A DNA stretch of 63,684 nt, the filler included, from Salisapilia sapeloensis CBS 127946 (Eukaryota; Protista; Oomycota): assembly GCA_023334545.1 (NCBI GenBank). It is 13 parts of 13 records of this genome, joined end to end, with 100 filler letters (N's around TTAATTAATTAA, not from the genome) between each part and the next. Parts side by side here need not be neighbours in the genome. Positions count along the whole stretch, not along the records: positions 29,307 to 32,949 come from JAADVB010000733.1; 12 more parts are not named here. One strand, 5' to 3'. The translations under genes were made by a program, and so were the position numbers. The notes beneath the pieces were generated by a model. That model worked only from the letters and a program-made list of their open reading frames with translations, searched no databases and had not been told where the DNA came from. Of this stretch, positions 29,207-34,020 are shown piece by piece (position 1 is the first letter of the stretch; every line of letters begins with the position of its first letter).

Positions 29207-29978
29207 NNNNNNNNNNNNNNNNNNNNNNNNNNNNNNNNNNNNNNNNNNNNTTAATTAATTAANNNNNNNNNNNNNNNNNNNNNNNNNNNNNNNNNNNNNN
29301 NNNNNNGACAGAGAGGTATGCCGCTCCGTCCATTACGCGAACGCGCGTTATCATGCGAGTGCAAAACCGGAGGTCCAATGATCCACCAAAGTAGGTCGAT
29401 CCACCTCGGCTTTTGGCACTCTACGACAAAGTATGATGCAAATGTGTGCTAGAAATAGGGCGACCATCATTCTGGTGCGTTAGTATTGCCAGACCACCAA
29501 AATGCTGTTAGATCGGATCCTATGCAAATCCTTTGTATTCGCGTTGCTAGATCATTCTCTACGGTTGGAATGACTGTGGAACATCTATCAGTAGAGTTTC
29601 GGTTGGCGAAAAACTTATCTTTGGTGGAGAAACACGGCTCAATCACTCGTTAACTGACTTGTCTACCGGTCGTCTCCACGTTACGCAATCGCTGTCTGTC
29701 CGTCGTAGTGTTTAAACAACAGACGATGAATTGGTACACACTTGGAAAGCAGGAGGCCAACAACGGTCGGCCGATCAGTAGAGAGACTCGTTGGGTTCAG
29801 AAGTCAGATGAACGAAGCTGAGGTGCACATCATTATCTGATTCAATTGAACGAACTAGTGGCATCGGTAGTAAAGAATCGAGTACGACGCAGTTGTTGTG
29901 ACAATCGTCTTGTATTCGCTGCACTGCTTATAGGCAAACCCTACGATTGTGACTGGAAATCTAAGTGAGCAACTGCAT

Positions 29979-31035
29979 CTAAAAGACAGTGACGATACGC
30001 CAGTCCATATCTTCGGGTTCAGTCACTAGCGATTCAAAGCGCCATGTCGCAGCAGAATTGCGAGGCACATTCTGATCTTCTCCTTCTTTCATACGTACTT
30101 GCAAATGTTCCGTCGACTCAAGTCGAACGTCTAACATCATTCGTTCCACGATGGTATCGTGGTCTTCTTGCGTAATTTCCAACCCTTCCACCTCCAAGTC
30201 CTCATCCTTGAGCTCTTCAGCCTGCTTGCTCGCGCGAGACAGCGCATCGGCTGGAGATTCGCCACTGCTAATAGCCTCCCCTAGCGTATCCAGTTGTTTC
30301 TGTCGAGCAATTGACATGGCCTCTGTGTGCTTAATGTTGGCTAGTGTCAACCGATTCCAGTGGACGCCAGAGATGTAGCATCCATGAATGTCTAGCTTAT
30401 CGAGAATGAATGTATGCCCGAAGCGGTTCGTCTCACGCATCGAGAATAGGAAAGCATCTAAACAGGCGGGAGACAGACAACCTTTCAAGGTATCTGCAGC
30501 AGGCGATTCCGTGATGGCACCTGTGGCGTAGTTCATAAACTCTGGAGAATACAACGAGTTCATGACGAGATCGCACGCTTGTTGCGCTCCTTGGATGAAC
30601 TCGACACCATCAATTTCAGTCTGCATGGGTAATTGCATCTTGGCAAAGAGCCACCATTTATGAGGAAGAGAATAGTTCGGTGCAAAGACGTCGTGCTCGG
30701 CGTACTTGTTAAAGTCTTTCGAACGCTCTCGTGCACGACGTAGCATCCGAGAAAGCAGATCGAATGGATTTTCCTGCGGAGGTTCCGATTGCGATGAGAA
30801 GTGCTGTGCGCGAGTAAGATTGACTGCGGATTTCTCCAATCTTCGTGTCGACTTATACTATAAGTAGTCATAGAAACGAGATTAGCATTACTGTAGTGCA
30901 TGTAGATGCTGCATAAGTGTACAGCCGACTGCAAGAATTTTTGTAAGAAGTACGCACCGTGCATCGCAAGACGCGTGCCGATCGCTCTGCTCCCCACGCT
31001 CTCATCGCTGATTCTTTGTGTGCATAGGAAGACAT
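29979..31035 (-). CDS. Mitochondrial Tim44-superfamily / MAIP1-like protein, 2 exons
   Basis: DGVEFIQGAQQAC... and C-terminal WRFES...DWRIV pattern. Intron 30957-30858 joins an Arg-rich presequence exon. Start is ATG 31035 or 31005. Confidence 0.55.
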
Positions 31036-31141
31036 CGCTGTAGGTTTCAGGAAGGTTTTCCTTATACTCATAAAAACAACCTTCGAACGACAAATATTAC
31101 TGCAACATGACTACCATCACAGACGACATTTCAACACGAGC

Positions 31142-32796
31142 ATGACTCCTCGATGGCGAAGAGTGCTACCACGACGCTTTCCAAGACATTCAAAGTTTGC
31201 TAGATCTTTTACTACACAGAAAAATGAGTCACCTGTCCCGACAGAGCGTATCATATCTGCTCTCGTTGTCAATCGACCAGGTAAGAGTGGCAAAATCAAG
31301 GTGCTGGGATGGTTTAGCTGATAATGCTTCACGTGCTCTTTATAGGTACATTGGCACACATTGCCGATATGTTTGGTATTGCTGGACAAAACATTTCGAG
31401 TTTGTGTGTACGTCCGACAGTCGTACCAGAGCTTTCTCGTGTTACAATCAACATCGGCTTGCGTGAAGGCGAGGTGACCAAGTTTCAGAAAAGGCTTCGT
31501 TCACTCGTTTGCGTTTCCTTCTTCCACATTACTAGTGTACAGGCCTGTGTGGAGAATAAGGAGCTCATGATCCGCTCCCAAGTTCTCATCCGTCTCGCAC
31601 CTTTCAGCGATAGAGATCGCTTGCAGTCCATTTTAGATGAGTTTGGTGCCACGGTCGTTGACCAAGACAATAATGCCGTCATACCAAACGAGCAGTTACC
31701 TGACCCAACCATTGACGATAAGGCACATAAGTCTAGCGAAATGCGCATCAATGAAACTTTTGTGCATTTGGTGGAAGATCCGGATCGGATAGCAGATTTT
31801 ATCGCAGCGCTAAAGCAGTCCAAGTACGACATTCAAGAGACACAGTCGTGTGCACCGCTGTTTCTAGACCGATCTCAGTCTACTTTAGATGCAGCAGATA
31901 AGAAAAGTTTTACGAGGGAAGTGAATGAACATGTGGAGGAATTACAGACAGATCCACATCCAGCTCGGAAACTACATCCTTCCGATGAACCTACTTCAGA
32001 GCCAAAGCCTTCATCGTATACACCATCGTCGACCTATGAAATGCATACAGATGAACGCGGCTACTTTATGCGCGACCGACTGCAGCTCCATGCTCGTATC
32101 GCTCATCAGTTGTACGAAGGTGTACCGCAGGACTTGACGCGTCCCAAGTTCGTACTCCTACTAGGAATCCCTGGCTCAGGCAAATCCTCACTATTGAGCC
32201 ATCTAGACTCTCTTGGTGAACTCACGCTTGGAGATTTTGTCAATTTTGATGTGGACGAAGTCATCGCTTTGCTGCCAGAGTTTTATCATGCCATGCTTAA
32301 TGTCGGCCTCGGGAATGAGTTCCATGCTGACGTCGACCGTCCACTCCCCCGACCGCAAGCTCGATACCAAATGTGTCGTGCTGAAGCGAGATTCATCCTG
32401 CATAAGAACTTGCACAGCTCTATTATGTGCCGTAAGAATATTATTCTTCACGGCAGTGGAAAGTCCTTCCATAACTACATGAACATTGTCGATCAAGTAC
32501 TGGCCGCAGGGTTTGATACTCAGGTCGTGTGCCTCGATATATCCACAGACGTAGCATGCGATCGGGTGGAGAAACGTAGCAATAATGGATACGGACGAGA
32601 CGTGCCCAAGTCACTTGTAGATTTCACAGCGTCGATGATTACTCGTACGTTTCGGTTACTCTCGCAACGTGTTGAGAACGCACACTTGTTCGACAGCCAA
32701 GACTTACCTCCACGACTGGTGTGGAGCAAGCAGGACTCAAATGTCGTCGTTACACATGGCAGTTCAGATCCTACACAACGCAAGTATGGTTTGTAA
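31142..32796 (+). CDS. Fusion: mitochondrial presequence + AHAS regulatory subunit (ACT + ALS_ss_C) + zeta-toxin-family P-loop kinase, 529 aa
   Basis: Exon 31142-31280, GT-AG intron 31281-31345, exon 31346-32796. The splice reconstitutes IISALVVNRPGTLAHIADMF..GQNISSLCVRPT..PELSRVTI (IlvH-like ACT). Then RSQVLIRL..DRDRLQSILDEFGATVVD...EDPDRIADFIAAL, Walker A GIPGSGKS (32164-32187), FDVD, RVEKR..GYGRDVP. Confidence 0.85.
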
Positions 32797-34020
32797 GTTT
32801 AGGCCATCTTCGTAGAGCGCCCAATTGGATATTATGCAAGGCATATTAGGCTTTACATGAACAACACGCAGAAGCTGTAATAAGAACAAACGCCCAAGTC
32901 TTTGGCGGCTCGTTCTACTCGTACATCGCTATCTACCTTTCCATGCCTANNNNNNNNNNNNNNNNNNNNNNNNNNNNNNNNNNNNNNNNNNNNTTAATTA
33001 ATTAANNNNNNNNNNNNNNNNNNNNNNNNNNNNNNNNNNNNNNNNNNNNAATACTAGAGAGAAGTATCACTCAAATTAGTCTTTACGGATGTAAACGTGT
33101 GGGTCAAGACGACCTCGAAGAGCTAGATGGGGTGTGAAAATCAGACGTACCGAACGGTCGCGTCGAGGATCGCTCGGAGCTACCTCAAGAAGTAAAAGGC
33201 ACTGGATAGAAATAAGCCTCAAAGCATGACAGAGCTCGATATTTCGTTCTTGTTACAGATGAATGGCCGAAAACACATTACAACCAACTCCCGGTTCACC
33301 AAGTCTACACAATGCGCTTAAGCAACTACAACTACCACCTAAAATGTCGACGATTAAAGTTCTGGTCTCTTTCTGGCAAACAGTCAATGTAGAGCCTATT
33401 TATGCTTTGTGGTAACCTGGTTCAGTTGTTGGATGGAAATTTTGTACGAGTTTTATAAATGAAGCAAGTTTCTGCTCATCACGTTGGAAAGTATACCGAG
33501 TGATGACTCGCAACAAGTTGAATATTGATGTGTTCGATGACACCAGATTTCCGATCTTCCATATCTTGCCTCCTTGTGTCGACAGACTTGGGCCATCTAA
33601 GTTTTGTATGGATACCCAATCTTCCACAAGAAGCAGCAATCAATCGTCTACTTTTGTACTTGATAATTGCCGGAATAGAGATAAAGACGCTAGGCATTAA
33701 ATACTTCCATAAAGTATAGGGTAGTCGAAGATTTGCCCATTTACCGAATAAGAATAGTATTGCTACTTTTCCGCTTCGATAGCATTGTGAATGGTACGCT
33801 AGTCTTCAATCTATCCATCGAATCTTTTTGCAATAGAAACTAGTTTTGAAGGATGTGGTAAAGCTCGGCGTACGCAAGACTTAAAGTTTCTCCGATAAGG
33901 AGATCACTTGTGTTGTCGCTGTCGCGGTACGTACCTACTAACTCCGAAATTCTTTTTAATTGATTCCGGATACTTGCGTTGGTCGTTAGTACTAGATTCC
34001 CTTGGGAGTCCAAAACGAAG

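Follow-up and report, generated by a model that had tools for sequence, protein, structure and literature searches.

A two-exon oomycete gene joining an AHAS-small-subunit-like module to a zeta-toxin-family kinase domain

A spliced fusion gene in Salisapilia sapeloensis

The gene described here lies on the plus strand of a 63,684-nucleotide stretch of DNA (the window) from the oomycete Salisapilia sapeloensis CBS 127946, in which 13 parts of the assembly GCA_023334545.1 are joined end to end; all positions are counted along the window. It occupies 31142..32796, within the piece 29307-32949 (record JAADVB010000733.1), and encodes a protein of 529 amino acids (aa). In the N-terminal half of this protein is a module resembling the small, regulatory subunit of acetohydroxyacid synthase (AHAS), comprising an ACT domain and a second domain like the Pfam family ALS_ss_C, and in the C-terminal half is a P-loop kinase domain of the Zeta_toxin family. 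The features of the locus are as follows, with residues numbered along the product of exon 2 unless otherwise stated, and with confidence in the AlphaFold (AF2) model given as predicted local distance difference test (pLDDT) values.

31142..31280, plus strand: exon 1, 46 codons and 1 nucleotide, with the start ATG, an Arg-rich extension and the first ACT strand, ISALVVNRPG
31281..31345, plus strand: intron of 65 nucleotides, GTAAGA...TATAG, with GT..AG ends, phase 1, within the Gly codon of NRPG/T
31346..32796, plus strand: exon 2, with the TAA stop at 32794-32796; its product, encoded by 31348-32793, is 482 aa
31142..31225, plus strand: presequence-like N-terminus, aa 1-28 of the full protein, with 9 Arg/Lys and no Asp/Glu
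31247..31533, plus strand: ACT domain of the AHAS-small-subunit type, spanning the intron; matches to PF22629, TIGR00119 and PDB profiles
31561..31875, plus strand: ALS_ss_C-like second domain; strand-helix-strand, insert, strand-helix-strand-strand in the AF2 model
31669-31746, plus strand: disordered insert in the ALS_ss_C-like domain, 26 residues (108-133), pLDDT below 50, unconserved
31876..32052, plus strand: linker, poorly conserved and partly disordered, far shorter in Saprolegniales
32053..32793, plus strand: Zeta-toxin-family P-loop kinase domain; PF06414 at 47.8 bits against a cut-off of 22.3
32164..32187, plus strand: Walker A loop GIPGSGKS with Lys279, aligned with GQPGSGKT of zeta
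32248..32256, plus strand: DVD motif, the second Asp of which (D303) aligns with the catalytic Asp67 of zeta (1gvn_B)
32449..32457, plus strand: His368-Gly369-Ser370, at the position of Glu116-Gly117-Thr118 of zeta in the 1gvn_B alignment
32563..32598, plus strand: Arg cluster R406, R410 and R417 in RVEKRS..GYGRDVP, invariant in the family and in distant relatives

The plus-strand open reading frames (ORFs) listed for the piece include one of 59 aa at 31142-31321 and one of 490 aa at 31324-32796. Excision of 31281-31345 fuses the two in frame, giving a coding sequence of 1590 nucleotides and 529 codons, and the spliced junction, ...ERIISALVVNRPG/TLAHIADMFGIAGQNISSL... (which continues ERIISALVVNRPG/TLAHIADMF...), agrees with the family consensus ERIISALVVNRPGTLAQIAD. 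An initial annotation of this DNA had proposed precisely this splice and had remarked that the plain ORF track lacks exon 1; the proposal is borne out by the ORF list, by the in-frame join and by RNA-like contigs from four runs of one study (X1-X4). Each of these runs has a contig lacking exactly 31281-31345, with GT..AG ends (the joint is printed as 31279-31343, which corresponds to 31281-31345 after the tool's +2 shift). The runs are unstranded and are not recorded as RNA, their RNA nature being deduced from the spliced contigs. In three of them, one contig of 1.9-2.2 kb starts near 31028 or 30958 and continues to the last position of the piece (32949) without a further joint, which leaves the linker free of introns and breaks. 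Transcript evidence over the predicted intron and the linker thus gives the expected result on both counts. The annotated orthologue of Pythium oligandrum also has a 65-nucleotide phase-1 intron in the same Gly codon, and the Saprolegnia diclina orthologue carries both halves in one intronless, continuous genomic ORF of 1440 nucleotides.

Two neighbouring genes might conceivably have been joined by chance in the gene model, and the long, poorly conserved linker is the one feature that would fit with such an artefact. However, no stop interrupts the ORF between the ACT domain and the kinase, both halves lie together on single contigs, and the same fusion is found in more than 50 orthologues, that of S. 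diclina included; in Saprolegniales the linker is nearly absent. On the continuous ORF, the spanning contigs and the orthologous fusions, we reject for practical purposes the idea of two separate genes, which we consider vanishingly improbable. The fusion is one real, expressed, two-exon nuclear gene encoding 529 aa.

An AHAS-small-subunit-like N half

Family, structure and similarity searches were performed with the 482-aa product of exon 2 and not with the 529-aa protein, which lowers the ACT scores obtained for the window. The ACT model PF22629 (ACT_AHAS_ss) gives 20.2 bits on the exon-2 product, from which the first strand is missing, against a cut-off of 27 bits, but 30.8-41.4 bits in full-length orthologues, above that cut-off. 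For the NCBIfam small-subunit model TIGR00119, the score is 38.9 bits (E 7.8e-10, residues 2-112), below the equivalog cut-off of 56.9 bits; the 13 residues absent from the exon-2 product would probably add little to this value, and not the 18 bits that separate it from the cut-off. The second domain scores 14.1 bits with PF10369 (ALS_ss_C) in the window protein against a cut-off of 23.2 bits, and a scan of three orthologues gave no match to this model at E <= 0.01. The combination of ACT, ALS_ss_C and Zeta_toxin expected in the initial annotation is consequently seen in part: ACT is recovered in the orthologues, and Zeta_toxin is recovered, but ALS_ss_C stays under its cut-off.

Profile and fold comparisons extend over both sub-domains. 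A profile built from 39 family members and searched against the PDB matches the small subunits of Arabidopsis (6u9h_F, 2.3e-15) and Thermotoga (2fgc, 8e-15), E. coli IlvH (2f1f, 7e-12) and yeast Ilv6 (6u9d_C, 2e-11), and the alignment of the family profile to Ilv6 covers both sub-domains (profile positions 12-211). The AlphaFold model (pLDDT 78.6, predicted template modelling score 0.68) has an ACT fold followed by a second alpha/beta unit, which is broken by a 26-residue stretch of low confidence; this corresponds to the insert of about 25 aa that had been noticed in the ALS_ss_C-like half from sequence. In Foldseek searches the N half matches IlvH, Ilv6 and the Arabidopsis small subunit, with 176-180 aligned columns to the whole chains 2f1f, 2pc6 and 2fgc. 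Within the ACT domain, VVNRPG retains its Asn and Gly almost without exception; in QNI the Asn (Asn15) is shared by all of a set of 15 sequences and by 38 of the 39 family members. We take these three to be the counterparts of the IlvH valine-site residues Asn11, Gly14 and Asn29.

The N half therefore shares with AHAS small subunits (IlvH 2f1f, Ilv6 6u9d, Arabidopsis 6u9h/6vz8) a PF22629-type ACT domain with the Asn/Gly/Asn set and the ...PELSRVTI strand, as well as a second alpha/beta domain in the same order, with profile and fold matches over both, and it shares with Ilv6 a basic N-terminal extension. It differs from them in its sub-equivalog score, in a second domain that fails Pfam, and in a very long branch: in a maximum-likelihood tree the N halves of the fusions form one clade (support 100/100) that lies approximately 2.9 changes per site away from small subunits of bacterial and fungal type. 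None of the canonical small subunits bears a kinase of about 250 aa as the fusion does, and in the Ilv6-type subunit P0216 the insert lies elsewhere than the 26-aa disordered insert of the fusion. Identity to orthologues is 63-69% for the ACT domain (in Pythium and Phytophthora) and approximately 68% for the kinase, but only 35-38% for the ALS_ss_C-like domain, which is the least conserved of the folded parts. The N-half module is clearly a derivative of an AHAS small subunit, strongly diverged and atypical. The earlier description of it as a full IlvH/Ilv6-like subunit holds as to profile, fold and the retained ACT residues, but was overstated, given the TIGR00119 score, the Pfam failure of the second domain and the length of the branch.

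The N-terminal extension bears on the likely location of the protein. As had been remarked from the spliced sequence, the first 28 residues are rich in Arg and free of acidic side chains. In 22 full-length orthologues, 25-77 residues precede the ACT domain; their sequence is unconserved, but almost all are basic and acid-poor. Because such an N-terminus looks like a presequence and fits with the mitochondrial fungal Ilv6, the fusion protein is probably mitochondrial.

One way to read the N half is as a genuine regulatory subunit of AHAS, be it the principal or an alternative one, which would dock on the catalytic subunit and bring the kinase or nucleotide-binding domain into the holoenzyme, where it might tie valine feedback to ATP status or phosphorylate some target at the complex. 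A precedent for nucleotide input to AHAS regulation exists in yeast, where Ilv6 responds to MgATP. The whole two-domain layout and the ACT ligand-site residues are kept, and several databases call the fusion 'acetolactate synthase, small subunit'. In addition, a profile search with the N half, restricted to the lengths of free subunits, gave no unfused oomycete small subunit, although this search needs shared 5-residue words and is weak; it returned only an incomplete fusion fragment from Globisporangium, together with bacterial proteins of the IlvH type and a few subunits of the fungal type. Against a role as an AHAS subunit are the sub-cut-off TIGR00119 score, the poor conservation and Pfam failure of the ALS_ss_C-like domain, the distance of the N half from canonical subunits, and the apparent presence in Phytophthora infestans of a separate canonical subunit of 241 aa. 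We regard this role as possible but doubtful.

The P. infestans protein deserves closer attention. PITG_03410, annotated as 'acetolactate synthase', is 241 aa long and was chosen as a target of host-induced silencing, and silencing of this 'ALS' gene led to field resistance (PMC12310827). As 241 aa is the size of a small subunit and not of a catalytic subunit, the silenced target may be regulatory rather than catalytic, a point not discussed in that paper. One of the PITG_03410 quantitative PCR (qPCR) primers translates to QLEDVV, a motif that the canonical small subunit P0216 and its variant P0225 contain unchanged; P0224 has QLEDLV, and QLEDVV occurs in none of the fusion proteins compared. 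P0216 was itself considered as the P. infestans gene and was ruled out, as both qPCR primers are without a match in its locus L001; the atlas features of P0216 indicate a fungal source. Since PITG_03410 looks like a separate canonical small subunit, P. infestans probably has such a subunit in coexistence with the fusion (P0018, 'Zeta toxin [Phytophthora infestans]'), which would then be a paralogue.

A zeta-type kinase domain with an invariant histidine

The initial annotation assigned the C half to the zeta/PezT type of kinase, with HGS in place of the usual E/D-G-T motif, and this assignment is upheld by the Pfam score, by the fold and by the 1gvn_B alignment. Its quoted motifs are all in place: GIPGSGKS at 32164-32187, DVD at 32248-32256, HGS at 32449-32457 and RVEKR..GRDVP at 32563-32604. 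The top Foldseek matches are zeta (3q8x/1gvn, E 2e-10), PezT (2p5t) and AvrRxo1 (4z8t), ahead of other P-loop kinases; E for 3q8x, 1gvn and 2p5t ranges from 2e-10 to 1e-7. A profile of the kinase domain with its distant relatives matches Pnkp1 (1.2e-14), zeta (1gvn_B, 1.6e-13) and PezT (2e-11), and an atlas feature search likewise indicates the Zeta_toxin family.

The zeta and PezT toxins of epsilon-zeta toxin-antitoxin systems (1gvn, 3q8x, 2p5t) are 3'-kinases of uridine diphosphate N-acetylglucosamine (UDP-GlcNAc). They offer the best fold match to the C half and share with it the Pfam family, the Walker A loop, the catalytic Asp (D67 in zeta, D303 here) and the lid arginines. Sequence identity is approximately 15%, however, and the fusion has His-Gly-Ser where zeta has Glu116-Gly-Thr118. 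Unlike the toxins, the fusion is without an epsilon or PezA antitoxin, and it is eukaryotic, intron-containing, vertically inherited and fused to a sensor; no match to Epsilon_antitox was found in the window neighbour or among the neighbours of the P. oligandrum and S. diclina orthologues.

Conservation in the catalytic region is strict. All 39 family members have K279, D303, R406, R410 and R417, and D303 is also kept in distant zeta-domain relatives. By analogy with Arg158 and Arg171 of zeta, R406, R410 and R417 are probably lid or transition-state arginines. His368 is likewise present in 39/39 fusion members, and position 370 is Ser in 37 and Thr in 2; most of the aligned nearest non-fusion relatives have D-G-T at the same site. 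With its Walker A Lys, catalytic Asp and lid arginines retained, the domain is probably an active kinase. A conserved apparatus with a single fixed, lineage-specific substitution points towards an active enzyme whose metal or substrate chemistry has changed, and away from a decaying domain.

The same substitution could also be taken to mean that the zeta-type domain has no catalytic role and serves as a sensor, a pseudokinase that binds ATP or another nucleotide and signals to the ACT module or to partners. The acidic residue after strand 3 (Glu116 in zeta, Asp in the nearest relatives) is His throughout the family, and the position of Thr118 is mostly Ser. Such a sensor seems unlikely to us: the invariance of D303, the Walker Lys and the three arginines from Saprolegniales to Peronosporales is unexpected for a pure binding module, and His can also ligate metal or act in catalysis.

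A eukaryotic precedent for a zeta-type kinase domain was cited in the initial annotation in the form of a plant calmodulin-dependent nicotinamide adenine dinucleotide (NAD) kinase, and the NADKc preprint confirms it. NADKc (At1g04280) is calmodulin-dependent and mitochondria-associated, with an N-terminal regulatory region of approximately 200 aa that contains a calmodulin-binding site, precedes the C-terminal zeta domain and controls it; among eukaryotes this architecture is reported only from plants and some algae, and the Xanthomonas protein AvrRxo1 is also an NAD kinase (NADKc preprint; structure 4z8t). NADKc and AvrRxo1 thus have zeta-type kinase domains that act on NAD and not on UDP-GlcNAc, and NADKc resembles the fusion in being eukaryotic and in placing a regulatory region before a C-terminal zeta domain. 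The likeness is one of architecture, and the regulatory regions differ: that of NADKc binds calmodulin and has no known fold, while that of the fusion is an ACT/AHAS module.

These parallels raise the possibility that the fusion is an NAD(H) kinase like NADKc and AvrRxo1, feeding ketol-acid reductoisomerase with NADP(H); this would be a narrower version of the metabolite-kinase reading that we favour below. NADKc shows that a zeta-type domain can serve as a mitochondria-associated NAD kinase in a eukaryote, and AvrRxo1 is among the best fold matches. Yet zeta and PezT fit the fold better than AvrRxo1 does, and the proteins closest in sequence are zeta-domain proteins that share about 30% identity with it, of which one is encoded by a phage. 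Nothing ties the kinase domain to NAD over UDP-GlcNAc or another substrate, and we consider NAD specificity improbable.

Inheritance, proposed mechanism and surroundings

A word-indexed search found 54 full-length relatives, and all of the named ones are oomycetes, from Globisporangium, Pythium, Phytophthora, Nothophytophthora, Peronospora, Hyaloperonospora, Aphanomyces, Saprolegnia, Achlya and Thraustotheca; the highest identity to the window protein is 55-56%, which sets its lineage well apart from the oomycetes represented in the database. In an exhaustive search of 1.84 billion representatives, just nine 50%-identity clusters were found at E < 1e-30, all of them in the fusion family, beyond which there is a drop to 84 bits and to proteins with the kinase domain only, at approximately 30% identity. 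No non-oomycete protein carrying both halves was seen. The N-half tree follows the order-level phylogeny, with the window protein sister to Pythium and Phytophthora (support 93/89). A single origin of the fusion is proposed, earlier than the divergence of Saprolegniales from Peronosporales, with vertical inheritance thereafter. The genes flanking the fusion are not the same in the window, P. oligandrum and S. diclina, and so offer no hint as to its function.

Three further members of the fusion family, P0043, P0052 and P0053, come from Logan/ENA. P0043 and P0052 branch outside both Saprolegniales and Peronosporales in the N-half tree; the three proteins may derive from early-diverging oomycetes or from environmental relatives, and could date the fusion. 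Among the kinase-only relatives, P0059 (833 aa; L005:6001-8502 and L006:2930-5431) is encoded on a phage-like contig with a large terminase upstream and a portal gene directly downstream, a position typical of head-associated or injected phage proteins. Another kinase-only relative bears a RadC-like domain.

The initial annotation knew of no description of the architecture. Our full-text literature searches found no paper describing or studying an ACT/AHAS-zeta fusion, so to that extent the statement stands, but more than 50 database entries already carry the fusion under automatically assigned names, among them 'Zeta toxin', 'ACT domain-containing protein' and 'Acetolactate synthase, small subunit'.

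We tentatively favour a reading of the protein as a mitochondrial kinase of metabolites whose activity is gated by branched-chain amino acids, and as a paralogue of the AHAS small subunit; to this reading we assign a probability of roughly 0.45. In this mechanism the ACT module would dimerise and bind a branched-chain amino acid, as AHAS small subunits do, and the ligand-bound module would allosterically gate the attached kinase, which in turn would phosphorylate a small metabolite, probably a nucleotide or nucleotide-sugar. We count in its favour that both end modules are constrained, the identity of the ACT and kinase domains being high against that of the ALS_ss_C-like part. Aspartate kinase, in which an amino-acid-kinase fold is followed by C-terminal ACT domains, provides a parallel, in that there too an ACT module that binds an amino acid is linked to a kinase from the same general part of metabolism. 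The fusion differs from it in having a zeta-type P-loop kinase and a whole AHAS-small-subunit module at the N-terminus.

Several points weigh against a gated metabolite kinase that is distinct from the AHAS subunit. The assignment of PITG_03410 rests on its size and on one translated primer, and not on its sequence, and the word-limited profile search for an unfused oomycete subunit, weak as it is, found none. With His at the position that is acidic in zeta, close to the site of Mg-ATP, catalysis could be weaker or different. A predicted complex of the N half with the kinase domain scored 0.00 in a prediction made without controls or alignments, a value that is neutral as to contact between the two.

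A bolder combination of these ideas would be a mitochondrial metabolite kinase (e.g. an NAD(H) kinase) that is switched by valine, leucine or isoleucine and docked on AHAS via its small-subunit module. We think this a long shot. If true, oomycetes would couple the feedback on branched-chain amino acid synthesis directly to cofactor or nucleotide phosphorylation, by a regulatory device without counterpart in plants, fungi or animals, which would be a lineage-specific target in an infection-relevant pathway.

The fusion is of interest in several respects. Zeta-type kinases are known mainly as bacterial toxins, and NADKc is the only characterised eukaryotic example that we found. The fusion family, conserved in the named Saprolegniales and in the Pythium/Phytophthora lineage, would be a second, independent domestication of a zeta kinase in eukaryotes, and its amino-acid sensor, taken over from the AHAS holoenzyme, is an unusual one for a kinase. 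With an invariant His in place of the Walker-B-like acid and the other catalytic residues kept, the family is a natural experiment that could inform zeta-kinase enzymology. Synthesis of branched-chain amino acids is a validated vulnerability of Phytophthora (PMC12310827), and an oomycete-only enzyme tied to the pathway could be a selective target.

Upstream of the fusion gene, a plus-strand ORF of 12 codons lies at 31107-31145 (MTTITDDISTRA*), and its TGA stop overlaps the main start codon (ATGA). Contigs reach upstream of this ORF, but they are unstranded and possibly belong to the neighbouring gene, so the upstream ORF is only a candidate part of the 5' leader. Short contigs of two runs have a further joint of 78 nucleotides at 30950-31027, with GT..AG ends on the plus strand. 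This may be an intron in the 5' untranslated region of the fusion gene, overlapping exon 1 of the minus-strand neighbour.

That divergent neighbour is the sole neighbour of the fusion gene in the piece, and its parts are as follows.

29979-31071, minus strand: whole gene, with its ATG at 31071
31071-30958, minus strand: exon 1
30957-30858, minus strand: intron, reading CT..AC on the plus strand
30857-29979, minus strand: exon 2

The joint at this intron is visible as loose ends in three runs. The 5' exon of the neighbour lies within approximately 70 nucleotides of the fusion start codon, and the two transcripts may overlap head to head. Its product of approximately 330 aa has a basic N-terminus and no Pfam match, and its atlas features resemble those of oomycete hypothetical proteins and, more weakly, of Tim44/Mba1-like mitochondrial proteins.

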